From Podarcis pityusensis (Eukaryota): DNA of 64,000 bases. The DNA is taken from assembly GCA_964106645.2 (NCBI GenBank), contig OZ067040.1; one strand, given 5' to 3'. A program made the position numbers and the translations under genes. The first letter of the stretch is position 1, and each line of letters begins with the position of its first letter. The notes under the pieces were generated by a model. The model had not been told where the DNA came from. It worked only from the letters and a program-made list of their open reading frames with translations, and searched no databases. This document shows, piece after piece, positions 7,001-61,630 of the stretch.

Positions 7001-10000
7001 CTTTATGCTTCAATTCTGTAAAGCCCGTATCTCTTTGATGTTTTCACATATTCTTTCCTATCTGCCTGGCCAATAGTAGATAATTTGTCTAGGCATACCT
7101 AGACAAAAAGCATAATGTGTTTCTGTTTTTTCTGTTGTCTTGAATCCCTGGGTGGCTAGTCTTCCAGATGGCATTGAATGTACTGGAACAAAATACATAT
7201 TAAGAAACCATAGGATGGTTAATCTCCTGATTTAATCAGGCCCTTGCATAGTCACCCCAGCAGCATTTATTGTGGGGAGCACATAAATGGTGGTTGTAGA
7301 ACATTTGGACTGTGCACACCTTTAAGTGACACAAAAAGGTGAATGCCTACATTTTGGTTATAGAACTAAAGCAGATTTGTTTGTTAATACCTTTTACATT
7401 GTTGCTACCTAGAAGCTGGCAAAATTGCTCTATGCAAAGCAGCTGTGTGGAAAAAGTAATGTCTTGCCTTGTACAGCTATGGACACAACTACACATTTCT
7501 GAGCCATTGCAGTTGCAAGAATCACCAATGGGAAGTAGCAGTAGTAAATGTGGATGTGCTGAAGCAGACATTGCAACCTCCATGGAATTGCATCCACAGG
7601 ATTACTTGGGATTCTTGTATAGTAGGATTCTGACATCCCAGCTGTATAATTTTGTCTGGGAAAAGGGAGAGAGATATCTGTTTTCTCAGGTTTTCTTTCC
7701 TGTTTATTTCTTGATGAATATGCTCCAGGAAGTGTCTGTGTCAAAATTAACAGATTTTAGCCATTTTATTTCAGCAGGCCTTGGGTAGCTTCAACCTTTA
7801 TGGCCAGACTGTGTTGCCAAGTCCATCATGTGGCAGCTGTTTGGAAAAAGACCTGCCATATATGTGGATCTCCTTCATAATCTTCCTCCTTACCTTTTTA
7901 TTTACCATATTTCCAGGCCACCTGTCAAATAGAAAATTGCCCAAGGTGGCATACATCATTAAATAACCAGTTAAATAACAAACAAAAACAAAAACAGTAT
8001 GGCTGAAATAAATAGCTTGACACAGATATAAATTAGTACAACTCTTTTGGCAAATTATAAACCTTGGATTAAAATAATGAATTAGAAAAAGAGTGAATTG
8101 GCTTTTCACTTGAAGCATCAGTATTTGAGATTTTTACAATGAACTTCTTTTTGGGAACAGTGCAAGTTTGTTTAATTGTTACACACTATGCTAAGTTTTA
8201 CAAATCATGATAAAGGTTTTGCTTAAGTAGCTTTGACAGTTTTATCAGAGGAGACATATGGCCTACAACTAGCAAAGGAAATCCTTTGCATGTATCTGCA
8301 AATTGCCTCTCAAGTGACCTTCCTTAACTATTAAGACATTTATGTTAAGTAATTATGCAAATTGTGCTTAGATTCAATAGGTGTTTAGCAATGTTTACTT
8401 GGATTATGGCTGTGCTGTAGCACTTCCACTTTAGGTGTATTCTATTTTGTTAGTCTGGGCCATGTCCCGAAATACCAAGACAAGATCAAGCTTTTCTTCT
8501 GAAGACGATAAATAAACAATAGTAAACAGAATGTGAGTTCTACTTACTATTAAGCATTTTAGGATATTCTCCTGTGGCCCTGGATATTGTCTTCCTCCTT
8601 TTCTGCAGATGGAGAAGGTCTGCCAATGCAGGTCTCTTCAATGTGGCCATGGGAACCTTCATGGCTATCACACCATCCATGCTATACTGGTAGGGAGCGA
8701 AAGGGTGTGTGTGTCAGTGGGGGGTTGAGAGAGATAATATCCTTCCCTGTATCCAAAGCCCTCCCCTCCCCCCACAATCTCTCTCCCCTAGAGGACCTCC
8801 AGCCCTAGAGCTTTCCCTAGTAAGGGTCTGGATTTGATGGTGGTTCTGCCATAGATTCTCACGTCCCTATAGCCAAAATAATGTCATTTTTTATGTATCC
8901 AGCTACAAAGTCTGTGATGCCCTTTATTGCAATTATAAATTACATTCTCTAGAGAATGCTATTTGGCAAAACTGCAGCTTTTAAGGAAGGAGAAAGTAAA
9001 GATCTTGGATAGTAGTTTGCTCTCAGTACTTGACAATAAATTAGAAAGTTGTGAGAAATGTGGATCCGTGTGCCTTACAGATATCCTCTGACCTAAACCG
9101 AGAGTGGCTATGGATGAAATTACTGTTGCACAGCAGATCTTTGAAACAAATTCAGAATAGTGGGCACTTCAGATTTCTTTTTATGGAATGAGTCCATTCT
9201 ACAAATATTCTCCATTATCAAAGTAAAATAAAGAGACTCTCTCTCTCTCGGCTAAGTGGTTGTCTTTAGCTCTGATTTTTTTGTGAGAGCAGAAATGTCT
9301 TGTATACTCTTGCAGAATCATTCATCATGGATTTTCTAAGTTGTTTCATTTGTTATTTCTCATGTTTGGATAGGAACAGCTCTCCATTTCATCCCATTTT
9401 AAAGGAATAGAGACCTAGCATTCTATATGTGTTGCAGATGAGCAGCTAGTGTTCCCGTTGCATGTGTTAACAGAACGACACATTCATAAAACTGTTTTGG
9501 CGATACGGTTGAGAACTAATGATCTGTTATTGAAAAGCAGAGACTTAAGTTAGAGAAAAATTGATTTACCTGGGTGTGAATTAAACAAGCTTTTGTGAGC
9601 ATAAACTCTAGACATGAAGTGCAATAGTGTGCCTTCCGTGATATTTATCGTCATTTTTAGGGTTTAGATAAGGTACATTTTTTAATTCAATTTTTTATGT
9701 TTTCTCTTTCAGGATAACATTTTGCCATATGCCGTTCCAGAGTAAATGGCTGTATGTGGGCACTGAAAGAGGAAATATACACATTGTTAATGTGGAGTCC
9801 TTCTCTCTCTCAGGCTATGTCATCATGTGGAATAAAGCCATTGAACTGTGAGTATGGTGTACTTTAAAATAAATGTAATTTATTTGGGTATCATTCTTTT
9901 TGGCAACTATATTCTCAATTGACACAACACACAAAATGTTGATGTGTTTCTTTTTTTGGTTGTGAAGCCCTGGTTTCTGACCTGTTATGTGTATATGTAT

Positions 10001-49700: not shown

Positions 49701-50719
49701 TTATATTTTTGTATTCTTCTGCAGCCAGATGGTGGATTGTCTCAGCTCCCATTATATAGATGTGAAAATGCTTCCTTGGTTAATCGCAACAGTTCAGAAT
49801 CAAAAATCTCCTGTTGGTGTTTCCAGCTCATTCTGTTGTTTTTATCTTGCTTGTTGTTTAGAGTTGCATATTATTATGTATTGTTCTTACTGCCTATTTA
49901 CTTAAACCTGTTTTATAAGAAATAAATATTAATGTAAAACCATGCCAAATACAAACGCATGTCAAGGACAAACTAACAAGGCAGCTATTAGCTTCTTCCC
50001 GCACTGCAACAAAACAGTTACCCTTGAGTAAGCAGTGGACTGTAATCATTTTATGTCAGGTGGAGGTTTGCTATTTAGTAAGGCAATAGTGTATTGGTTT
50101 TATTCTCAGTAACTACTACTAAAATAAATTGTTCTTTGAATAGTTTTTCATGCAAGCTTACATTTCTAAATGTTATATAGATTTTAGATTTTGAAAAATA
50201 ATCAGTTCAACTAATTCCTAAAAATGGAAAGTAAAATGTTGTACTTAACATAAGCATATATTTGGATATCAATCATTCATTGCCATCATATTCTTTCTAA
50301 TAAATTTTCTTTCAGAGTAGTTTTTGGCAATTGTAATGGTATCGCAATGGTTGATTACATCCAAAAGACCACACTTTTAAACCTTGGCACCGTTGAGTTG
50401 TATGGTTCTAATGATCCTTATAGGAGGGAACCCCGATCTCCACGTAAAAGCAGGCAGCCATCTGGAGGTAAGGTCCATACACTTGATACTTGCTGATCAA
50501 TTTTTGTATTGGTCTTCTGCTTACCGGACTGCAAGCTGATTAGGAGTGCATGTGACTAGCTTTTCCCTTGAAAGGAACTTGCACAAACCAAAACGTTTAT
50601 ATGTTGATAATATTCTGTAGGGGCTTCCTTTTAGAAAACATCATCTGATTATGGTAGGCAAACAGCCTTCATTTTAAGAGTATTCCAGACTGCCAAATTT
50701 AGCATATATAATAAGCACA

Positions 50720-50759
<40 letters not shown>

Positions 50760-51937
50760 TACCCCATTTCCCTCAGCCACTGTGGGCAGCTTACAGAACA
50801 TATATAACATAATAAAATGTCAAACATTGGACATTTCCCAATACAGGGCTGCCTTCAGATGTCTTTTAAAAGTTGTGTAGTTCTTTATTTCCTTGACATG
50901 GGGGGGGGACACATTCCACAGGGAGGGTGCCACTGCCTAGAAGGCCCTCTGCCTGCTTCCCTGTAACTTTACTTCTCACAGTGAAGGAACTGCCAGAAGA
51001 CCCTCTGAGGAGGACTGGGCTGAGTGATGGGGATGGAGATGCTCTTTCAGGTATACTGGGCTGAGGCTGCTTAAGGCTTTAAAGGCCAGCACCAATACTT
51101 TGAATTGTGCTTGGAAATGTACTGGGAGCCAGTGAAGATCCTTTAGGACCAGTGTTACATGGTCCCAGCGGCCACTCCCAGTCGCCAGTCTTAGCTGCCA
51201 CATTCTGTATTAGTTGTACTTTCTGAGTCAGCTTCAAAGGTAGCCTCCCCAGTATAATATTCTACTTCATTACTTTCTATACAAAAAGTGTTATTCTTTA
51301 CCAAGGTTTATGTGCTCACATCAACCATCTTCCATTGTCTTGCCTTTCCCTGTTTGAGATTTACTTTTCGTCTTCCTTTGTGCTATCACGCCCTGTTATC
51401 ATGAATGCCCTGTTAATTTATTCTGAACTAACTGCTTCACAGAACCACTCAGCACTTACCCCATTCATTTTTTGACACAATTATTTTAGCATGCTGTATT
51501 TGATCTGTTAAGGTATGTATTGGCACATGGAAGCAATCACATAAATTCAGCAAACCACAAGCCTAAAATTCTCAGAGGAAAAAGTGCATATGAACAGAAA
51601 ATTTTAGAGGTGCTTCATACCTGAAGATGTGGACAAGCTGCTTGAAGAAGTGCAGCCAACCAGCTGCCCTTTGATCCTTGCCCAGCTTGGCTTCTGAGAG
51701 CTAGCCGTAGACGGTTGGCTGGGATTGCAATGAGTGATTAATGCTTCACTTGAGGAGAGGGACTGACCACCTGCCTGGAAGGACATGGTGGTGTGGCTCC
51801 TCCTTAGGAAGACATTTTTGGTCCCAGAAATGTTAAATTTTACTGTATTTTTACTGTATTTTACTGTATTTTTGGTTTCTATGGAAGCCGCCCAGAGTGG
51901 CTGGGGAAACCCAGCCAGATGGGCAGGGTACAAATAA

Positions 51938-51985
<48 letters not shown>

Positions 51986-54900
51986 CACTATTGCCCAGTA
52001 CCAAATAACTTATTTTTGGACAACGCTTGAGAGGGTTGTGGCAGTACAGCTTTAGACATGCTTGGAAAAAACTCATCTCAGCTATCTGCCAATCTCCCAT
52101 TCCCACCACCCTTCTGAGTAATACCCCTCCCCACCTTCTCACTATATAGAAGGATCTGGCAACTTCTGTTTCAGTGTATCTGAAGAAGTGTGCTTGCACA
52201 CGAAAGCTCATACCAAGAACTAACTTAGTTGGTCTTAAAGGTGCTACTGGAAGGATTTTTTTTATTTTGGAAAAAACTCTTTGCTTAGATCCATTTTAGT
52301 CTTGCTTTAGGCCCAGTTATGGTACTGAAGCCACCTTGGACACCCTGGTTGATGACATTTGTCAGGAGAGAGGTGAGAAGAGTGCAAGCCAGCTCATTCT
52401 CCTTGACCTCCCACTGTCCTTCTGGATCATCTCAGGGAGGTGGGGGTTGGGGGCACTGTACTTCAGTAGTTCCAATCCTTCATCCAGGGCTGTTTCCAGA
52501 AAGTAGTTATGGGAGGCTACTGTTATGTGCCATGAGAGTTGCCCTGTGGTGTCCTGCAGTATTCTATTTTGTCCCTGGAACATCTATATGAAGCCACTGG
52601 GAACTGCCATCAGGAAATTTGGTGTCACCAATATGCAGATGATACCCAGTTCTGTTTCTCTGTTGGATATGAATTGGGAGAGATAGTCAAGATGTTAGAC
52701 TGATGCTTAGAGGTGGTGATGGACTGTGTGTGAGCCAATAAACTGAATCAGAATCCTGAAAAGAAAGCAGTATTATGTGTTCCAGGTTCTTGATTCTGGG
52801 ATGTGAGGACCTGTCATGGTTGGGGTTGTACTTCCCTGGACGTAGCATGTCCATGGCTTCAGGGTGCTACTGAATTCAGCCTTATCATTGGAGGCTCAGT
52901 TGGCCCTGGTAACTAGGTATGCCTTTTTCCAGCTCTGGATGCTTCACCAGTTACAGTCTAATTTGCACAGAGACAACTTGGCCACAGGACTCCATGCTCT
53001 GGTAACCTCCAGCAGCCAAACTACTGACTGGGGCTCCCTTTAGAACTCACATAAGCCCTGTTCTAAAAGAGCTGCACTGGTTGCTGGTTTATTTCTGGGC
53101 TTAGTTCATGGTGCTCACTTAGTCCCCAAATATCTGAAAGACCACCTCCTTTCCTGCAGACCTTCTTGGGTGTTAAAATCCGCGAGGTTGGTAGTTCCAC
53201 TGTCTTTAGAGGCCTCAGGATGTGACCTGAGATGAGAGCATTCTCTGTGTGGAATACCCTCCCCACAGAAATATATCTCTGTCACCTTCATTATACAGCT
53301 TTTTGTCATATGCTTAAAGACACCTGTTTTGAGCATAGTTTTAATCTTTTTTTGAATGCTCTATTTTCTATTACCCTGGGACCTTTTAGTGTAACCAGCC
53401 CTGGGACCTTATAGTGTGCAGTAACCACAATACACCATTCTTCCACAGGAGGAAGAATGTGAAAGAAGTAAAAGTGTAGTGAGAACATGCTTCTTCCCCC
53501 AAGTGTTTGGGGATATATGTCTCTGCTTCAAATGCCATGTTTAATGTGGCACACTTCCTGTGAAGGTCATTGGTTGAGTATTGGCTCCACCTGGTGGTTG
53601 AAGGTGGGAACAGAACTTGTGGGAAGTAGGCAGCTCCTGGTTGACTCTTGCCTTCATCAAAGTAGTCACATTGCTTTTGAGCTCCTGTTCTTCTCAGGTT
53701 TTCTAAATTCTACTTTTTCCTCTTCATTCCAGTGTTTGCCTTCCTTTTAACGGTTTCTGAGCCATCCCATTCTCCCTTCAGTATACCAGGGCAGTATGGT
53801 TGTCACTCCTAACCTTCTCTCCTCCTCACGACTGCTCCAGCACTTTCTTCTCTAGCCTGTCTCTTTTCACCTGAGCCCTTCTTTCTTGGCTGTTTTCTAC
53901 ATTCTTTGCTGCTTGCATCTCTCCCATAAATAGAACCCCTTTGCCTTGCCTGCTTGCCTTCTTTCTCTCATCCTGATTTCACCAGTAATTGCTTCAGTGG
54001 AGGATGGAGGCAGGTTTGTTGGTATTTGAACCTCGGCGATTCTTCTTCACTATTTTGGACCACTGCACTTTCTGGTTTGGTGTGTGCTATGTATCCATGC
54101 CTCAGCATTCTGGCTTTCTGAAGAGTAGGGATGGCAGTCAGTGTGCTCTCTGGTGGCAATAGCCACGCCTCCTGCCCAAACTCAGCCTTTGAATAAACTT
54201 AAAGTGCCTGCTAAGGCAGCTTTTCCTTCTTCCTCTAAATGTAAGACAAAGGTCTTAGCATTTTGCCTCATAAACAAGCACTAAGCATCTCATAGGCAGC
54301 CGTTATCCATGGAAAGGGATGAATCCATTTATTGTATCTGTGAACAGTCTGGACCTTTAACAACATTTGCCTTCACCATTGCCTGGGCCTGATGGGTTTT
54401 ATCTCTCATGACTCCCTCTCTGTGCCTTTGCTCTGCAATGGCCTTAGATGTCATTCCCCTCCTCCAGAACTTACCTCAGCACCATTTAAGGGGGCATCTG
54501 TTCTTGTTGAACCAAAATCCTTTACAAAGTCCATACCATTTCCTTCTACTTTTAAAAAAGATCCTGAAGGCAGAGAGGGACTCTGTGTCCTTGTAGTATA
54601 AAAATACGTTTCATAGTTAATTAATACTATAGTTTAGAGCCTATTAGTAGAGGTTCAGTAAACCGCTGTCTTCTTGGGCCTGGGCTTATTGTACACCGTT
54701 CCTTGATTTCTGTTCTTACCTGGGCCCTTCATAAAATCAGGGAGGAAAAGCCACAGTGGTCCTTTTAGCTTCCTTCTGGCCTCGACATCTGTGGCCGTTG
54801 GAGATCCTGATCATGGCAGTATCTCCATGGCACCCTCTTTGCTGTCTAGATGTCAGAACTGCCTACTTCTCACAAGTTCTGTTCCTGCCTTTGACCGTCA

Positions 54901-57900
54901 GATATGGAACCAATATTCAACCAATAACATTCATCAGGCACTGAAGATCTGCTCTTCTGGTAGTAACCAATGGAACTTTTGTGTACTTATATGCAATTAT
55001 GAATTACTATAATAGCCACATGGAACACTGCAAATATTTCAGATATAAACTGCAATATTCCATGAATTACCACTTCGTAATGTTTGTAAAACTATTTATG
55101 GCTGTTGAATAAACAGCAATTCTGGCTCTTCCTACCTACCTTTCCTGGTAGTTCCATATTGAAGATGGTTAAATAATTGTAGTTGTATTAAAAGAATAAG
55201 TACAAGTAAGTCTGGCTATTTTATAATATTAGTAATATATTCTCTTAAATGAAACAGTTAAACAGCTGAGTAGGGATAGGTTTGTTTTGTCATTAAATTG
55301 TTAGTAGTATTAATGGGAAATTTTATAAATATTACGTAAGACAACAAGTAAATTATATTACACTGTGTGAATTCTGGCACATGCATGATTTGTTGTATTT
55401 CAGTTGCTGTCTAACAATTTCCCCCCAAATACATTGTTTGCTTGGATCTTAAAGTTTTTCTGCAGATTTTTTTTCTTTCTCCAAATATACTGTGTTGGTG
55501 TTTTTGTCTTTCCTTTCTCATTGCTTCAATAAGGCATGCTGGCTGTGGCTTCTTGCATGTGTGGCCTCTCTAACTTATATTCAGAGTCTGTGAAAAAACT
55601 TCGCACCTCTTATATAAGTAAGTCATCTCATAAGAATAAAGTGTTTTAACATCCAGTTGATTAGGTTATATGCATTCATCACCCTGAATATTTTACCATA
55701 GCCTTTACTTTTCAGCTTCTTTCACTAACATATTGGCAGAGATTAATTCTATAATAATATAATTATAGACTGTTACCTGAGATACTATCAATATGGAATA
55801 TTGGGTACAATAAGATCCAGATTACATCCTTCATCTATTTTGCAAACAACAGTAAAACAAGTGGCATTAGTAGATAATAGAATACAAGTCACAAATGTGC
55901 AGTGGTGCCCACAAATGTGCAGAAATGCGTGCAGTGGTGTCCACAAAGACCTTCATTGGTGCCCTTGGACAAAGGACCAAGACTCTGAACTTTCCTTTTT
56001 ATTTTTAATAAGCTAGCCTGGCTGCCTCTGTCAGTGCTTTTTAGCCAGTGAGTGAAGTCAGAGCTGTGATTGTTGAATGTGTTGTATGGACACCAGACAA
56101 TATTAGTATTGGTATTACTGTTAATTTATTAATCACCTTCTAAACCATTGTCTCAAGGTGATTTACATATAAAATAATTTAAAATGGTTAAAAACACAAA
56201 AACAAATCAATTTAAAACAAACGTAAAACTTGTTATAAAGACCCATTTATCCAGCTGGGAAAGCATTCTGTTTCTCCTTTCCATTTAGTGCACTTTTCCT
56301 GCTTGTCTTGTTTGCTAGTAGTCCCTGGAATCTCCGAAGTTTATCCTTCCTTTTTTCCTAGTGATCAGGATGCAACTTTCTTGTGGTGGGTTCTCCTGAG
56401 ATCAGATACTGCCTAGAAGTTATTTTCTGCAAATACTTCTACACAATAAGTGTGGGTGAATTTTAAAGCATCCCCTCCCTAAATGGCAAAATTCAAAATG
56501 TGAACTTTTCAAAAGAGGCTTAGGCATGTCTCCTGCTGTGCTGGACTTAAAGCCAGGCACTCATTAAGAATTCACTGTATAGTTAAATTATGATACAATA
56601 TTATACATGTTGTACGTTTCATTCAAGTAAAAGTGACATTAACTGTTCTTGGGGTGCAAGTGCAGACATGTCTGGACTACAAAGGTGTAATTGCAAATGG
56701 CAGGGTAGAAGATGACCCAATAGTGTGTGTACTGGCCCCAGTATTGTACTGTGCATTTCTTAAAATTTCTATCTCTCTGTGTTGGTCTGTAGTCTCTGGA
56801 TTAATCTGTAATTCAGGTTTTGAGCAGATCTGTAAAATGAAGCTCTCTGTTCTCTCTTCGCTATGGAGGGTAATGGAGGGCAATGCAGTTCATTGGTTCT
56901 GTTCCTGCTCCTAGGGCTGTTTCCAGAGAGTAGTTTGGGGAGGACCATTGTTTGGCACCATGGGAGTGGAGCTGTAGGCTTCATCTTGTCCTCCATGCTA
57001 TGTAACATCTATATGAAAATGCTGGGAGCTCTCATCAGGGGTTTTGATGTGAGGTGTCACCAATATGTGGGTGCTAGACCAATGCTTGGAGGCAATAATG
57101 GGTGGGATGTGGCCCAATAAGTTGAAGGTGAATACTGAAAACACAGGTATTATGTGTTCTAAGTTGTTGAGTCCAGGACGTGGGGGCATGGTGTGTTCTG
57201 CACAGCTTGGGAGGGGAGGATAGTCCAGGATCCAGTATTGTCATTTGAGGCTCAGTTGGCCTTGATGCTTAGATATACCTCTTTCCAGCTTTTGACTGGT
57301 TTACAGCTCTAGCCTCTTATGAACTGAGATGGCATGATCATCATACTCCATCCACTGATAACTTCCAGGCTGGATTATTGGAATGCACTCTATGTGGAGC
57401 TGCCTTTGAAGATGACTTGGAAACTGCAACTGGTCCAAAATACAATAGCCAGGTTACTGGTTGGATTTCATTTAGAACACACCTCTTTACTCTGGCCTTT
57501 GATACCTGAAATACATATTTTAGATGTAATCTGTTTTAACTGTTTTTCACAAGGGTCTTCTGGTGAATGGTGTATAATAATAACTAATATTATAATAGAA
57601 AATCTAAAAATGGAAATAACCCTTTCCACTTTTGGCCAAAGTGGAGAATCCCTGCGACAGGGTGAGCTCCCGTTGCTTGGTCCCTGCTCCTGCCAACCTA
57701 GCAGTTCGAAAGCATGTCAAAGTGCAAGTAGATAAATAGGTACCGCTCCAGCGGGAAGGTAAATGGTGTTTCTGTGCGCTGCTCTGGTTCGCCAGAAGCG
57801 GCTTAGTCATGCTGGCCACATGACCCGGAAGCTGTACGCCAACTCCCTTGGCCAATAAAGCGAGATGATCGCCGCAACCCCAGAGTCGGCCACGACTGGA

Positions 57901-58221
57901 CCTAATGGTCAGGGGTCCTTTTACCTTTCCCTTACTTTTCTCTGTAATCCATATTAGGGTGGTACCTTTATTAGGCCATTTAAAACTCCCAGATCCATAC
58001 ATTTAACATTTTGGGGGGAATGGGAGCAATGGCCTGGCTCTTTGTCAGGAATAATTTTGCTTCTCTTTTTTTCGCAACACCAACTTTTCCAATGCTTGTG
58101 TGTATCCTCCCATAGGTTTTACAGATCTCTGATAGGTCTTCCAGCATGAGGCTGCCTAGCTGCCTGTGGAGTTCTGAAGAGTTCTAGATATTAAAGTAGA
58201 ATAATGTAGTTTTATTTATAA

Positions 58222-58252
<31 letters not shown>

Positions 58253-61200
58253 TGTGTGTGTGTTAAGAAAGCCTTCACTCCTGTGATTTTACAAAGAAAA
58301 TCAAGAGCTCTTCAGTGCCTAGCAAGCAACATTATGGACAGCCTTGTTTATTGCAAAGCCCATGGACCTAGAGAAACCTAGAACTGTAAGATAACAAACA
58401 ACAGATTGACATGAGGCTTTGTGAGGCTTTGTACTTCTGCCTTTCAGTGTCACCTTTACACTTCAACACCTTTCATAACAGCATCTCCTTCCAAAGCAGC
58501 CCAAGTATTTCATCATCTGTAGTGATGCCTGTTGTTGCTACTTCGGTTTTGTAGTGGATACAGTGCTTTTTTTATCCTTATCAACGGTCTAGATGCCAAA
58601 ATCACATGTTGACTGTCACGTTGATTGAGCAAGAGTTCCAAACAACCACCACAGTCCTGGATTTTTCACCACCATGGTGTTTTCTGAAATTAGTGGTTTC
58701 TTGGGCCTAGAAGGGCACAGATTATCAAATAGATCAATATATTTGAAGTATGTATTTTTAGGCCTTTCATCAAAATTTGATCTGTTTTGACGACACTGGT
58801 AGGCAAATACTTAAACATGTTAAATATTACTAATTCTAGCTTGCTTTTTATAGTCTATGCTGGTTTTTAAATGTAATCTATTTGTCCTTACCATAAAGAG
58901 GAACATCTATTTCCCAAGGAAATGCTTTAAATTCCATGGGTTCATAGAATTTTCTGTTCATGTCATTGGATCCAGACTTACCTGTGCTTAGATTAGACCC
59001 AATGAAATAAGTGGGGCTTAATTCTTATATTCAGCTTGGTTACCTTTCTTTGTGATATACTTGTTTACAGTACAGGTAATTTTGCATTAATCACATATAT
59101 TACATAGAAAAATCACATTGAAAAATGGCTTTCATGCACATCTATACCAACTCCCCTTTTCCCTGAATCTTCATAATCATCCTGTTCCCCAAAGAAGAAA
59201 CACTGATACTTTGAACAGCAAAACACGTTTGTCAAAACTCTTAGTTAAAAATATAATTAAGTATCGGATTTGATTGTTTCCCCACTGGGTACAAAAATAC
59301 CTTATGTGTAATGTTTGTGTCAAGAATTAAAAGTGGTCCACAGCTGTTGAAACCTGTTGTGTTCTTTGTATTTTACAGCAGGTCTTTGTGATATTAATGA
59401 AGGTACAGCTGTACAAGAGGATCGTTGCAAGTCACCCACCTCAGGTAATGAACTGTTCTTGGAAACGCTTTAGAACTAATAGTACTTCAAAACACCTTGT
59501 AGCAGGCTTCTCTTCTCTTTTGTTTTCATGCTCCAGGAGGATTTTTACTATGCCACTGAACTTTACAGTGGTTTTCTCAAATATACACAATTCAGACAAG
59601 TACATACAGCTGAATACTTGGTTTGCCTCAAAGCCATTCTTATATATTTGTCATTATTTGTTATTTACAGTGTTTAGAATGCATTACTATAGGAAATACT
59701 ATATTATAAGGGGAATGTGTTTTATGTCTCTTGGGCTATCTGTTTCAAGAAGAGATTATTCACAGTAGAAATGTGTTCTAACTCCTACTCTCATCACAAT
59801 CTTTTATTTGTAGGAGCTTTCGTTGTTCTTTGCCAGAGGTAATTTAAGTGGGAAAAGGTCATCCCACTTTTGTCACTTCTGCTGCTGTTATAGTAAAATT
59901 AACCAACAGGGTGGAAAGTATACTGTATAATAATAGGAAGCAAGGAGTGAGTAGCGATTTCATTAAACTTTAGAATCTTTATTTCAGATAAGCAATTTGG
60001 CAAGTTGTTATATTTTTCTTAAATAGGAGTTGAGACTTTTTCAGTGGATTAGATTTTAATTGGACCTAGCAAAAAAAACTCCTCCCTCTGCTTCCCTGTC
60101 TGCTTTTTCAGCAGCAGCAAAATCATCATCATCACAGAATCCAGGGAGCAAGCGGGAGGGGGGGGGCTAACAGTGTCACCACAGGAGGGTGAACAGGGGC
60201 TTTTTGTGTACAGTAAGCCTGCAACTTAACACACATTTAACTTGTGCAGATTCAGCTTTATGTGCATGGCAAATTTATTGATTGATTCTTAAAAAGCAGG
60301 CAGGGTTCTGGGGAAAATGACTCTGGCAATCCCACCCACCATTGGATTTTGACTAGACACAATTTTGCCTTTAGGTGTGATCCCTCGATTAAGCCATTTT
60401 TTTAATCATGTGTATTAATTTGCTGAACCCAATCATGACTCTGACTTGGGTAGGGAGGAGAGTGCCTCCCATCACTAGAAGAGAATGAACGTAATATTCC
60501 CAAGGAATTCAGGAAGTATTCTTATTGAAAGTAGTAGTTCCTGATATCATTTGTATCATTAATTTTTTTTTCATCGGTACAATGTTGGTATGCATAGAGA
60601 AGGGAGGGAAGGTTTTTTATATTCTTAGTTAAAATGTAATAAATATATGCATGCAGAAAACTATTTACAAAATTCATTTTTACAGGTAAACAAAGGATGT
60701 TATTTCCAATTAGTTTTTAAAGTAATTAATAGCAAAACAACCACACTTCAAATCTTTTCTCTTTTGGATTGAAATACAGAGAATTGGCAAAAGTAGCTGT
60801 ATTTTCATTTGTTATCACAGAGATAAGTGCACTGGAACACACTTTAGACCTAAATGAAGCTATTTCTTCTGAATTATTTTGGCAATATTGATAATACAAA
60901 AATTGACATTTAAAATGTGAACTAGAATCCCTGCTATTATTATCATGTGAATATTTTTGTTAATCTGAACACATGCAACCTTTCCAGACTGTTTTGTTTC
61001 CCGTTTCCCGATTCCCATCAAAAAATATGTATCTTCTATGCTTTCCTTTGGTTGTGTGGTCTCACCTGTACTAGAAAATTGTAGCACCAGCATAAGTTCG
61101 AAAAATTAAAGCTGTGTATGATGAAAGTGAAACATGGAAGACGCAAAAGTTATCTGTCTCAAATGTAGATGTCCTTATGCAAATTCTAAGGGCATAAAGC

Positions 61201-61630
61201 AGGAGATATAGGTGAATACTCCCTCTTTTTTTGCAGGTAAAAAGCCTGAAATAAATCATCCATAATACCCAAAGAGGTGTTTATTTAGGGGTTTATTGTT
61301 GCATATGATATGGATTAGGATATATAGTCTTTCTCATTTTGTCATCTGTCGTAATTTTTTTGTATGCATCCTTTTTTTGTTAATATCCATTTCGTATGTC
61401 CCTTTCATTCTTATCTTCACTCATTTAGGTTCTGGTTCTCCCAACAATTCTGATGATGATCAAAAAATGAATAATTTTATAGAAAAGGGTATAGTATTTT
61501 TATTTTTAAGAGAATTATCATAAATTTTCATTAGCTCATATTTTTAGTAAATTGACATTTTGTATTGAAATATTATTTGCAGTGAAGACCAAAAGCAGAA
61601 AGTTTTCCAAGATGGTAGCCAATGATATAG
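919..61630 (+). CDS. STXBP5: STXBP5 (syntaxin-binding protein 5 / tomosyn-1), partial multi-exon CDS, exons ~4-21; gene extends beyond both window edges
   Basis: The spliced exons translate without stops from GALVSALADDTLHLWNLRQKRP to KTKSRKFSKMVANDI and match tomosyn-1 (EPRSPRKSRQPSG, NSDDDQKMNNFIEK) rather than STXBP5L. All introns are GT-AG with matching phases. Confidence 0.97.
3487..3776 (-). mobile_element. Short bipartite BovB/RTE-derived non-autonomous element (5' part joined to 3' tail)
   Basis: 12-bp TSD CAACAATAGTGT at 3475-3486 and 3777-3788. 3487-3549 matches the 3' end of the BovB copy at ~19195-19259. 3550-3776 reads like a BovB 5' end (CCCCTTCATGGATCACTGCCTTGTCGTGGTGAAGGGG...). 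Confidence 0.8.
4962..5156. mobile_element. Tc1/mariner (Tigger/pogo-like) MITE, copy 1
   Basis: TA|CAGTGGTAG...TACCACTG|TA. Same family as 32648-32869, in opposite orientation. Confidence 0.85.
5549..5832 (+). mobile_element. Squam3-type tRNA-derived SINE with (CTT)n tail
   Basis: A-box-like TGGTGTAGTGG, B-box-like GGTTCGCTCTCC, core GTGACCTTGGGCCAGTCAC, and a (CTT)n tail at ~5790-5832. Confidence 0.85.
9713..9847 (+). CDS. STXBP5: STXBP5 exon (~5), 135 nt
   Basis: tttcag|G...GAACT|gtgagt; ITFCHMPFQSKWLYVGTERGNIHIVNVESFSLSGYVIMWNKAIEL. Confidence 0.96.
11098..11325. mobile_element. Non-autonomous DNA-transposon-like element containing an L2-type 3' end
   Basis: Imperfect TIRs CAGACCTTCCAA / TTGGAGGGTATT and flanking AAAAGG on both sides. 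Internal GTCCCTATTTTC repeats. The internal GGAAGCCGCCCAGAGTGGCT is shared with the L2 tail at 51883-51902. Confidence 0.55.
13551..13724. mobile_element. Old hAT (Charlie-like) MITE
   Basis: TIRs CAGTGGTTCCCA / TGGGAACCATTG; degenerate 8-bp flanks (cagtaggc / caatagca). Confidence 0.55.
15195..15258 (+). CDS. STXBP5: STXBP5 exon (~6), 64 nt
   Basis: tttcag|G...AAG|gtatgt; SSKSHPGPVVHISDNPMDEGK. Confidence 0.96.
17373..17543. mobile_element. Degenerate Tc1/mariner (Tigger-like) MITE
   Basis: TA|CAGGGGAATCCCTGCTT ... AAGTGGGGAGCTGCCTG|TA; imperfect TIRs with TA flanks. Confidence 0.5.
18155..19261 (+). mobile_element. BovB (RTE clade LINE), 5'-truncated, reverse transcriptase C-terminal half
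   Basis: ORF 18371-19252 carries LRYADD and RLQYFGHLMRR and ends SRTRLND. The upstream GVRQGCILSP motif is broken by CGA>TGA at 18356-18358. (CAA)-type tail; AGTAGCAG flanks at 18147-18154 and 19262-19269. Confidence 0.95.
20074..20157 (+). CDS. STXBP5: STXBP5 exon (~7), 84 nt
   Basis: ttacag|CTA...GAG|gtaacc; LLIGFESGTVALWDLKCKKADYRYTHDE. Confidence 0.96.
21897..22243 (-). mobile_element. Sauria SINE (Squam1), near full length
   Basis: Highly similar to the copies at 37015, 43791 and 57646; (ACCTTT)-type tail at the left end. Confidence 0.92.
24693..27800 (+). mobile_element. Large degraded element, possibly a DIRS-like (tyrosine recombinase) retrotransposon; boundaries approximate
   Basis: The first ~400 bp are homologous to 39142-39500. 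Decayed recombinase-like peptide traces occur near 27260-27700 (QASAV...RFLPG; SLFVQF...RGEKISKPSVS by eye). No intact ORF. Confidence 0.35.
27493..27556 (-). mobile_element. L2 LINE 3' end fragment
   Basis: ATACCCCACCCATCTGGCTGGGTTTCCCCAGTCACTCTGGGC is the reverse complement of the L2 tail at 51889-51930. Confidence 0.75.
28894..29231. mobile_element. hAT (Tip100-like) non-autonomous element
   Basis: 17-bp TIRs CAGAGGCTTACCTAGGG / CCCTAGGTATGCCTCTG (16/17 match); 8-bp flanks gttggaaa / cttggaaa. Confidence 0.8.
31125..31211 (-). mobile_element. CR1 LINE 3' end fragment
   Basis: GTAGAATCTTATAGTTGGAAGAGACCCAAGGG...TAGTCCAACCCCCTGC, the reverse complement of a CR1-type tail (compare 43098-43159). 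Confidence 0.7.
31714..31862 (-). mobile_element. Penelope-like element terminal-repeat fragment
   Basis: The reverse complement reads CTGAAGAAGTGTGTATGCACACGAAAGCTCATACC...TTAGTTGGTCTCTTAAGGTGCTACTGGAAGG; homologous to 52180-52255. Confidence 0.75.
32648..32869. mobile_element. Tc1/mariner (Tigger/pogo-like) MITE, copy 2
   Basis: TA|CAGTGGTACCTTGGGTTA ... TAACCCGAGGTACCACTG|TA; internal TAACCTGAAG repeats. Confidence 0.88.
33457..33600. mobile_element. Degenerate palindromic hAT MITE (relative of 46601-46736)
   Basis: GGCCCTCCAAATGTTGTTGGATTACAACTCCCAT ... GATGGGAGTTG arms. Confidence 0.55.
34886..35009 (+). CDS. STXBP5: STXBP5 exon (~8), 124 nt
   Basis: gatcag|GCA...CATG|gtaagt; AIHSVAWHHEGKQFICSHSDGTLTIWNVRNPTKPFQTITPHG. 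Confidence 0.96.
36418..36496 (+). CDS. STXBP5: STXBP5 exon (~9), 79 nt
   Basis: ttttag|GA...GCTGG|gtaaga; KQVKDGKKPEPCKPILKVEYKTTRAG. Confidence 0.96.
37015..37364 (-). mobile_element. Sauria SINE (Squam1), full length
   Basis: TSD TGAGCTGG(A/G)GGTA at 37002-37014 and 37365-37377; B box GGTTCGAATCC on the minus strand. Confidence 0.95.
38647..38801 (+). CDS. STXBP5: STXBP5 exon (~10), 155 nt
   Basis: ttgcag|A...AATG|gtaggt; EPFIILSGGLSYDTVGRRPCLTVMHGKSTAVLEMDYSIVDFLTLCETPYPN. Confidence 0.96.
39142..39500 (+). mobile_element. Second copy of the 5' region of the element at 24693 (extent to the right uncertain)
   Basis: AAGATGCTCTCAGG...GAGCTCCCTCTAG...AGGCAGGATTGC and GTAGTTTAATGTTTG are shared with 24693-25100. 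Confidence 0.55.
40760..40795. repeat. (TG)n microsatellite
   Basis: Uninterrupted GT dinucleotide run ~140 nt upstream of exon ~11. Confidence 0.95.
40934..41006 (+). CDS. STXBP5: STXBP5 exon (~11), 73 nt
   Basis: tcttag|AT...ATGG|gtaaga; DFQEPYAVVVLLEKDLVLIDLAQNG. Confidence 0.96.
42042..42189 (+). CDS. STXBP5: STXBP5 exon (~12), 148 nt
   Basis: ttaaag|G...AAG|gtacca; YPIFENPYPLSIHESPVTCCEYFADCPVDLIPALYSVGARQKRQGYSKK. Confidence 0.96.
42273..42340 (+). CDS. STXBP5: STXBP5 exon (~13), 68 nt, after an 83-nt intron
   Basis: aaatag|GAA...CTGG|gtaagt; EWPINGGNWGLVTQSYPEIIITG. Confidence 0.96.
43098..43159 (+). mobile_element. CR1 LINE 3' end fragment
   Basis: GGCAGGGGGTTGGACTCGATGGCCCTTGTGGTCTCTTCCAACTCTATGATTCTATGAT, ending in the CR1 ATTCTATG-type repeat. 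Confidence 0.85.
43791..44109 (+). mobile_element. Sauria SINE (Squam1) with two internal deletions
   Basis: 12-bp TSD CCTATTCACATT at 43779-43790 and 44110-44121; GGGACGCGGGTGGCGCTGTGG head and CCTTTACCTTTACC tail. Confidence 0.95.
44743..44783 (+). CDS. STXBP5: STXBP5 exon (~14), 41 nt
   Basis: tgatag|G...GCAA|gtgagt; HADGSIKFWDASA. Confidence 0.95.
45798..46018 (+). CDS. STXBP5: STXBP5 exon (~15), 221 nt
   Basis: tcctag|TA...CCG|gtaatt; ITLQVLYKLKTAKVFEKSKNKDDRPSTDIVDEDPYAIQIISWCAESRMLCIAGVSAHVIVYRFSKQEITTDVIP. Confidence 0.96.
46601..46736. mobile_element. Young palindromic hAT MITE
   Basis: Exact 8-bp TSD ATATAGTA (46593-46600, 46737-46744); ~57-bp near-perfect inverted arms starting CAGGCATAGGCAAACTCGGCCCTCCAGATGTTTTG. 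Confidence 0.93.
47457..47635 (+). CDS. STXBP5: STXBP5 exon (~16), 179 nt
   Basis: ttgcag|ATG...TTAAA|gtaagt; MLEVRLLYEINYIESPDSEQVPPLPTPGTGSNPQSIAPQSHPSTSSSSSDGLRDNVPCLK. Confidence 0.96.
48834..48959 (+). CDS. STXBP5: STXBP5 exon (~17), 126 nt
   Basis: ttgcag|A...GGCTT|gtaagt; VKNSSLKQSPGYQVELVIQLVWVSGEPPQQITSLAINSAYGL. Confidence 0.96.
50316..50467 (+). CDS. STXBP5: STXBP5 exon (~18), 152 nt
   Basis: tttcag|A...GGAG|gtaagg; VVFGNCNGIAMVDYIQKTTLLNLGTVELYGSNDPYRREPRSPRKSRQPSG. Confidence 0.96.
50721..51245 (-). mobile_element. L2 LINE 3' fragment with (ATT)n tail
   Basis: Minus-strand peptide DHVTLVLKDLHWLPVHFQAQFKVLVLAFKAL (L2 ORF2 C-terminus); (ATT)n at 50721-50757. Confidence 0.85.
51838..51983 (+). 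mobile_element. Younger L2 3' end with (ATT)n tail nested in the older L2
   Basis: GGAAGCCGCCCAGAGTGGCTGGGGAAACCCAGCCAGATGGGCAGGGTACAAATAAATT(ATT)n. Confidence 0.8.
52075..52266 (+). mobile_element. Penelope-like element terminal-repeat fragment nested in L2
   Basis: 13-bp direct repeat TTGGAAAAAACTC at 52062-52074 and 52267-52279; homologous to 31714-31862. Confidence 0.8.
52176..52213 (+). ncRNA. Minimal type I hammerhead ribozyme-like motif (Penelope-associated)
   Basis: GTAT-CTGAAGA-A-GTGTGC-TT-GCACAC-GAAA-GC-TC-ATAC: CUGANGA and GAAA cores, stem II, 4-bp stem I and a palindromic AGCT in place of stem III. Confidence 0.6.
55534..55617 (+). CDS. STXBP5: Putative additional alternative STXBP5 exon, 84 nt, phase 1/1 (GMLAVASCMCGLSNLYSESVKKLRTSYI)
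   Basis: Pyrimidine tract + caataag|GC...ATAA|gtaagt. Open in the STXBP5 frame and a multiple of 3. Resembles the recalled STXBP5L segment CMRGLSNFYPDLTKRIRTSY at the equivalent position. Confidence 0.8.
56860..57470 (+). mobile_element. Degraded L2 LINE RT fragment
   Basis: NIYMKMLGALIRGFDVRCHQY; LITSRLDYWNALYVELPLKMTWKLQLVQNTIARLL. Confidence 0.8.
57646..57930 (+). mobile_element. Sauria SINE (Squam1), 5'-truncated
   Basis: Starts within the B box (GAATCCC); the body is near-identical to the other three copies. Confidence 0.92.
58225..58263. repeat. (CA)n/(TG)n compound microsatellite
   Basis: (AC)n run followed directly by (TG)n. Confidence 0.85.
59379..59444 (+). CDS. STXBP5: STXBP5 exon (~19), 66 nt (63 nt if the distal AG of CAGCAG is used)
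   Basis: ttacag|CAG...TCAG|gtaatg; AGLCDINEGTAVQEDRCKSPTS. Confidence 0.94.
61429..61488 (+). CDS. STXBP5: STXBP5 alternative exon (~20), 60 nt, hypervariable region (b-tomosyn type)
   Basis: atttag|GT...AAGG|gtatag; GSGSPNNSDDDQKMNNFIEK. Confidence 0.92.
61583..61630 (+). CDS. STXBP5: STXBP5 alternative exon (~21), 48 nt, hypervariable region (b-tomosyn type)
   Basis: ttgcag|TG...ATAG|gtagga; VKTKSRKFSKMVANDI; preceded by a 94-nt intron. Confidence 0.92.

Follow-up and report, generated by a model that had tools for sequence, protein, structure and literature searches.

A probable ancient cassette exon in lizard STXBP5 (tomosyn-1) with a counterpart in STXBP5L

Tomosyn-1, the product of STXBP5, is a widely studied brake on the vesicle release that underlies synaptic, endocrine and platelet secretion. 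Three isoforms of tomosyn-1 (s, m and b) and four of tomosyn-2, the product of STXBP5L (s, m, b and xb), have been described; the spliced exons encode a hypervariable region, for which SUMOylation and phosphorylation by PKA have been reported in tomosyn-1 (PMC3188574). We analysed a 64-kb window (the whole stretch of 64,000 nucleotides) from the lizard Podarcis pityusensis, in which an intron of STXBP5 holds an 84-nt open segment (55534–55617, + strand) that is part of none of the three described tomosyn-1 isoforms (PMC3188574). The segment is most probably a genuine ancient alternative cassette exon of STXBP5 and the counterpart of an extra cassette in STXBP5L. It resembles the classical tomosyn-1 cassettes (s, m and b) in lying in the same gene region, in being symmetric in phase (1/1, as are their exons of 66, 60 and 48 nt) and in falling in the same loop, but it has no sequence similarity to them and is located upstream of them.

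The window had been assigned to STXBP5 on sequence alone, and searches with tblastn bear this out: tomosyn-1 proteins gave 15 exon matches, in order, across 919–59458, collinear with the proteins and including the tomosyn-1-specific hypervariable exons (AGLCDI.. and the b insert). The constitutive exon that precedes the cassette (hereafter exon 18; 50316–50467, +) shares 84–96% protein identity with tomosyn-1 proteins and contigs and ends in ..RKSRQPSG plus one base (phase 1), followed by a GTAAGG donor. The next STXBP5 exon (AGLCDI..CKSPTS; 59379–59444, +) is 66 nt long and has phase 1/1; the sequence-only reading had its phase and start right, and we correct its end to 59444 and its length to 66 nt. 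The acceptor of this exon is of the NAGNAG type (cag followed by cag, 59376–59382), such that the exon starts at 59379 or 59382, and the one-residue alternative is probably used; both forms occur in protein models of other species, with Ala after ..QPSG in P0004 and without it in P0001 and P0012. Further downstream lie two b-tomosyn-type exons, the first at 61429–61488 (+, 60 nt, phase 1/1), which matches the b-specific segment in a toothfish protein (P0071) and a teleost locus (L002), and the second at 61583–61630 (+, 48 nt, phase 1/1), which also has fish counterparts; together they encode the 36-residue b insert. Inclusion of the cassette keeps the frame, because phase 1 is found both at the end of exon 18 and at the start of the downstream exon. 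Indeed, as all hypervariable-region exons of the window (84, 66, 60 and 48 nt) have phase 1/1, every combination of them is in frame.

The acceptor, donor, phase (1/1), flanking exons and encoded peptide that the sequence-only reading had given for 55534–55617 were all recovered when we re-read them from the sequence. A pyrimidine tract and a weak AAG acceptor occupy 55504–55533 (+), the acceptor itself (55531–55533) reading cattgcttcaatAAG and being followed across the junction by G. The frame is open for 28 codons from 55533, with the first Gly formed by the split codon, and a TAA stop stands immediately 5′ of the acceptor. At the other end, the last exon base is A and the donor (55618–55625, +) reads GTAAGTCA. 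A 33-nt exon that would begin after an internal AG (55583–55584) was considered and rejected, as this AG is the end of a conserved Glu codon and has no pyrimidine tract. The intron also contains two perfect (ATT)n microsatellites (50721–50757 and 51938–51983) and two long stop-free stretches (50869–51261 on the minus strand and 57328–57732 on the plus strand) that resemble decayed retroelement open reading frames.

A frame as short as 28 codons, and one without RNA support, could in principle be open by chance between chance splice-like motifs. Against this, a strict scan of the window (an AG preceded by a tract with 75% or more pyrimidine, a GTRAGT donor, a length divisible by 3 and an open frame) retrieved only two exon-like segments on the plus strand, of which one is the cassette and the other a real STXBP5 exon (9713–9847), and none on the minus strand. 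The scan criteria were picked after the cassette had been seen, so that cross-species conservation is the stronger test. When a fish protein was compared with the 64-kb window by tblastn, the cassette was matched in its proper place among the exons (E = 3e-5), and the conservation across seven STXBP5 loci and one paralogue described below is decisive: the cross-species data refute a chance origin, to which we assign almost no probability.

The cassette is present at the same place in six STXBP5 loci besides that of the lizard, four from teleosts and two on tetrapod-type contigs. In the locus of the Patagonian toothfish (L001), it forms a discrete exon between exons 18 and 19. A word search (99–315-residue class) found three more teleost genomic open reading frames; the loci L002, L004 and L005 carry, in this order, exon 17, exon 18, the cassette, exon 19 and the b exons of stxbp5. 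The two tetrapod-type contigs, L010 and L008, were chosen on the basis of their exon 18, and the cassette follows it 1.2–1.6 kb downstream. L011, which has a mammal-type exon 18 and ends 0.5 kb past that exon, was left out of the comparison. In all seven STXBP5 loci the cassette is intact and exactly 84 nt long, with the AG of the acceptor at the same aligned column and always preceded by A, and with an invariant GTAAGTC donor (the shorter GTAAGT is common to 8 of 8 aligned loci, including that of the paralogue). Stops or frameshifts in relatives, which the sequence-only reading had named as evidence that would count against an exon, were found in none of the seven, and length and frame are constant.

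The first six codons of the cassette are variable, and a core of S-C-M-x-x-L-S-N-L-Y-S-E-S-V-K-K-L-R-x-S is nearly fixed. Of the seven STXBP5 loci, six keep the basic patch that had been noted in the lizard peptide (K-K/R-L-R), and L010 has K-K-P-R. The CxC motif noted alongside it occurs in the three tetrapod-type sequences only, with C-M-S in its place in teleost STXBP5 and C-M-R in STXBP5L. The word TGCATG occurs inside the cassette (55554–55559), and of the eight aligned loci six retain it, STXBP5L among them; on RNA it corresponds to a GCAUG motif of the Rbfox type, and it could be part of splicing control or merely reflect the Cys-Met codons.

At the nucleotide level, the lizard cassette is 95% identical to that of L010, which is probably another squamate. 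In L008, the cassette is 81% identical to that of the lizard and exon 18 only 74%, with saturated silent sites in exon 18; apart from exon 18 and an island of 114 nt that surrounds the cassette, no region of L008 can be aligned with the lizard. Conservation falls sharply beyond both splice sites of the cassette (alignments A1 and A2). These alignments show that the cassette, its length, its frame and both of its splice sites have been kept throughout the divergence of teleosts and tetrapods.

We further examined selection on the cassette. Pairwise dN/dS values are about 0.2–0.5; those between the lizard and the six other STXBP5 loci, a measure that the sequence-only reading had proposed, range from 0.20 to 0.40 and are thus well below 1. 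Silent-site divergence between the lizard and L010 is 0.113 in the cassette and 0.452 in exon 18, that is, about four times lower in the cassette, and between the lizard and L008 it is 0.565 in the cassette and saturated in exon 18. Across the seven loci, 12 of 27 third codon positions are invariant. Old alternative exons under regulation typically differ from the constitutive exon next to them in this way, with a lower dS and a higher dN/dS. The substitution patterns show that the cassette is under purifying selection at the protein level, with an additional constraint on its silent sites.

To compare the cassette with known proteins, we collected 150 tomosyn representatives through a HMMER search with the neighbouring 50-residue exon and searched them with the cassette peptide using local BLASTP. 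Three proteins matched (P0071, P0057 and P0042), each a few residues past its exon-18 match. Two of these are of the STXBP5L type: P0057 from Coilia (75% identity to the lizard cassette, E = 4e-7 in the 150-protein set) and P0042 from squirrel (60% identity, E = 2e-5 in the same set), and the STXBP5L cassette match begins 4–7 residues after that of exon 18. The likeness to a tomosyn-2 segment that the sequence-only reading had proposed proved sound, the STXBP5L string that it gave being found exactly in squirrel STXBP5L (P0042). A word search with the STXBP5L cassette found 250 proteins, and among the 120 matches listed all are fish STXBP5L; overall, the STXBP5L cassette is annotated in hundreds of STXBP5L protein models. 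Models with and without it differ in the residue before the junction (G versus D or E) and in the residue after it (G versus S), which places phase 1 on both sides of the STXBP5L cassette. In Tetraodon, the STXBP5L exon (L007:21820–21888) is 69 nt long, with an AG acceptor, A as its last base and a GTAAGT donor.

The two cassettes therefore share their position directly after exon 18 or its equivalent, their phase (1/1), their last base (A) and their donor (GTAAGT), as well as a core common to the lizard exon and STXBP5L (C-M-x-G-L-S-N-x-Y ... K-x-x-R-T-S-Y); judged by eye, the cassettes of lizard STXBP5 and pufferfish STXBP5L agree in about 70% of the aligned columns. They differ in length (69–72 nt in STXBP5L versus 84 nt) and in the N-terminal part, which is shorter and different in STXBP5L. 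The presence of a homologue in STXBP5L at the same intron position, with the same phase and donor, means that the cassette predates the duplication that gave rise to STXBP5 and STXBP5L, an origin that the sequence-only reading had put forward and that common position, phase, donor and sequence similarity support well. The STXBP5L cassette is presumably the exon that marks the longest (xb) form of tomosyn-2; Groffen et al. 2005 is reportedly the source for linking it with the name xb.

Part of this conservation would also be expected if the segment merely resembled an exon and were in fact a conserved intronic element without coding function, for instance one that regulates or enhances the splicing of the alternative exons nearby. 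Nucleotide conservation is unusually high and extends to third positions (the 12 of 27 that are invariant in seven loci), TGCATG recurs in six of eight aligned loci, and inclusion in RNA was not seen in four runs. Such an element would not, however, account for a segment of exactly 84 nt and in frame in seven loci, with a paralogue of 69–72 nt that is also in frame, nor for a dN/dS well below 1 or for conservation that ends at both splice sites. Moreover, hundreds of STXBP5L protein models include the paralogous segment, which is a bona fide coding exon. We consider a non-coding element very unlikely and a coding cassette exon the better description of the locus.

The exon is already present in one annotated protein, KAK1893640.1 (P0071; 'Syntaxin-binding protein 5, partial', Dissostichus eleginoides, the Patagonian toothfish), in which the orthologous segment has the same flanking exons and is 82% identical to the lizard cassette over 22 residues. 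This model differs from the lizard exon in using an acceptor 18 nt further upstream, which gives 102 nt (L001:19729–19830), whereas the AG shared by every locus yields 84 nt; the 102-nt form could reflect an artefact of the model or an alternative acceptor specific to fish, and the gene model itself may be ab initio. Through this fish model the exon is in part annotated already; among tetrapods, no protein model in the length classes searched contains it. Word searches with the STXBP5-type cassette among proteins of 99–1015 residues found no annotated STXBP5 besides KAK1893640.1 and no transcript-derived fragment, and a search with the fish cassette in the 319–1015-residue class returned only the query itself. 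An exact look-up of the genomic 37/38-codon open reading frame found no entry in the protein collection, and a PDB sequence search with the cassette peptide gave no match. Predicted RefSeq isoforms that contain the exon may exist, for example among models of more than about 1170 residues, the range of most full-length predictions.

For evidence of splicing, RNA runs were located using the exon with 60-nt flanks as the query. Several runs that are, or probably are, of RNA and that stem from about ten organisms contain a share of the sampled words that fits the exon part alone. Three contig sets (X1, X2 and X4) and one raw RNA run (X22) were mapped to 53490–59480. At a low coverage of the gene, neither the contigs of X1, X2 and X4 nor the reads of X22 contain a splice joint to or from the cassette. 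An X1 contig covers the cassette (55491–55641, depth 2) and an X2 contig reaches it (55357–55556), both colinear with the genome; an X4 contig from another organism spans 55495–55626 with seven differences, none of them listed in 55569–55626. The raw run X22 has zero reads on the cassette, and in the bin that contains the next exon its depth is only about 2. The cassette-bearing contigs, which were themselves selected by the exon search, have low depth (2 to about 8) and are colinear with the genome across the splice sites; they are unspliced pre-mRNA or DNA. The cassette is outside the dominant isoform in the sampled runs, and the longer tomosyn-1 isoform that had been predicted for the lizard has, at this low depth, which gives little power to detect it, no spliced read or contig in the four RNA runs.

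The mapped region also includes a repeat (57490–58090) of huge RNA depth (about 3,000 raw X22 reads and contig word depths up to 3.6e5) that occurs in many variant copies. This repeat filled the tables of joints and loose ends, so that loose ends at the splice sites of the cassette were hidden. The loose-end consensus of the repeat contains a GGTTCGAATC-like word, which suggests a SINE family of tRNA origin, either transcribed in abundance or present within many transcripts. An Rfam match of the expressed repeat to a bacterial sRNA was sub-threshold and is spurious.

The lack of spliced RNA in the four runs, together with the listing of only s, m and b forms for tomosyn-1 (PMC3188574), would fit a relic exon, one that had a function in ancestral vertebrates, and perhaps has kept it in fish, and that is no longer spliced in lizards and has not yet decayed. 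However, the lizard, its close relative L010 and the distant tetrapod-type L008 all keep the 84 nt, the frame and the splice sites; the flanking intron of L008 can no longer be aligned with that of the lizard; and silent sites are more conserved in the cassette than in the constitutive neighbour. Taken together, these observations argue for continuing constraint within tetrapods, and we regard a relic as unlikely, if less so than a non-coding element. We retain the reading as an alternative exon that is genuine in evolutionary terms: the cassette is an ancestral hypervariable-region exon, retained intact in the lizard, and its inclusion is probably tissue-restricted.

When included, the cassette would be spliced between the exon ending in RQPSG and the exon starting with AGLCDI, and would add 28 residues to the hypervariable loop of tomosyn-1. 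Its inclusion would most likely be regulated, and either low in level or confined to certain cell types; from the weak but conserved AAG acceptor, the A as last exon base and the low silent-site divergence, we infer that such inclusion is rare or restricted to particular cells. The conserved core, which is rich in Ser, Thr and Tyr and continues into K-K-L-R-T/S-S, may constitute a short linear motif such as a binding site or a target of basophilic kinases; the K-K-L-R-T/S-S patch and the Ser, Thr and Tyr that surround it suggest a motif that is phospho-regulated or serves in binding. This putative motif would sit in a loop already known for regulatory modifications.

A broader possibility, which we put at slightly less than an even chance, is that an 'xb-like' tomosyn-1 isoform exists across jawed vertebrates, made in particular cell types only, with a regulatory motif common to tomosyn-2 and a splicing code that resides partly in silent sites and predates the split of the two genes. 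The cassette clearly illustrates that an alternative exon can exceed the adjoining constitutive exon in the conservation of its silent sites. A fourth tomosyn-1 cassette would add a testable regulatory module to the protein and would give both tomosyn genes matching sets of isoforms.
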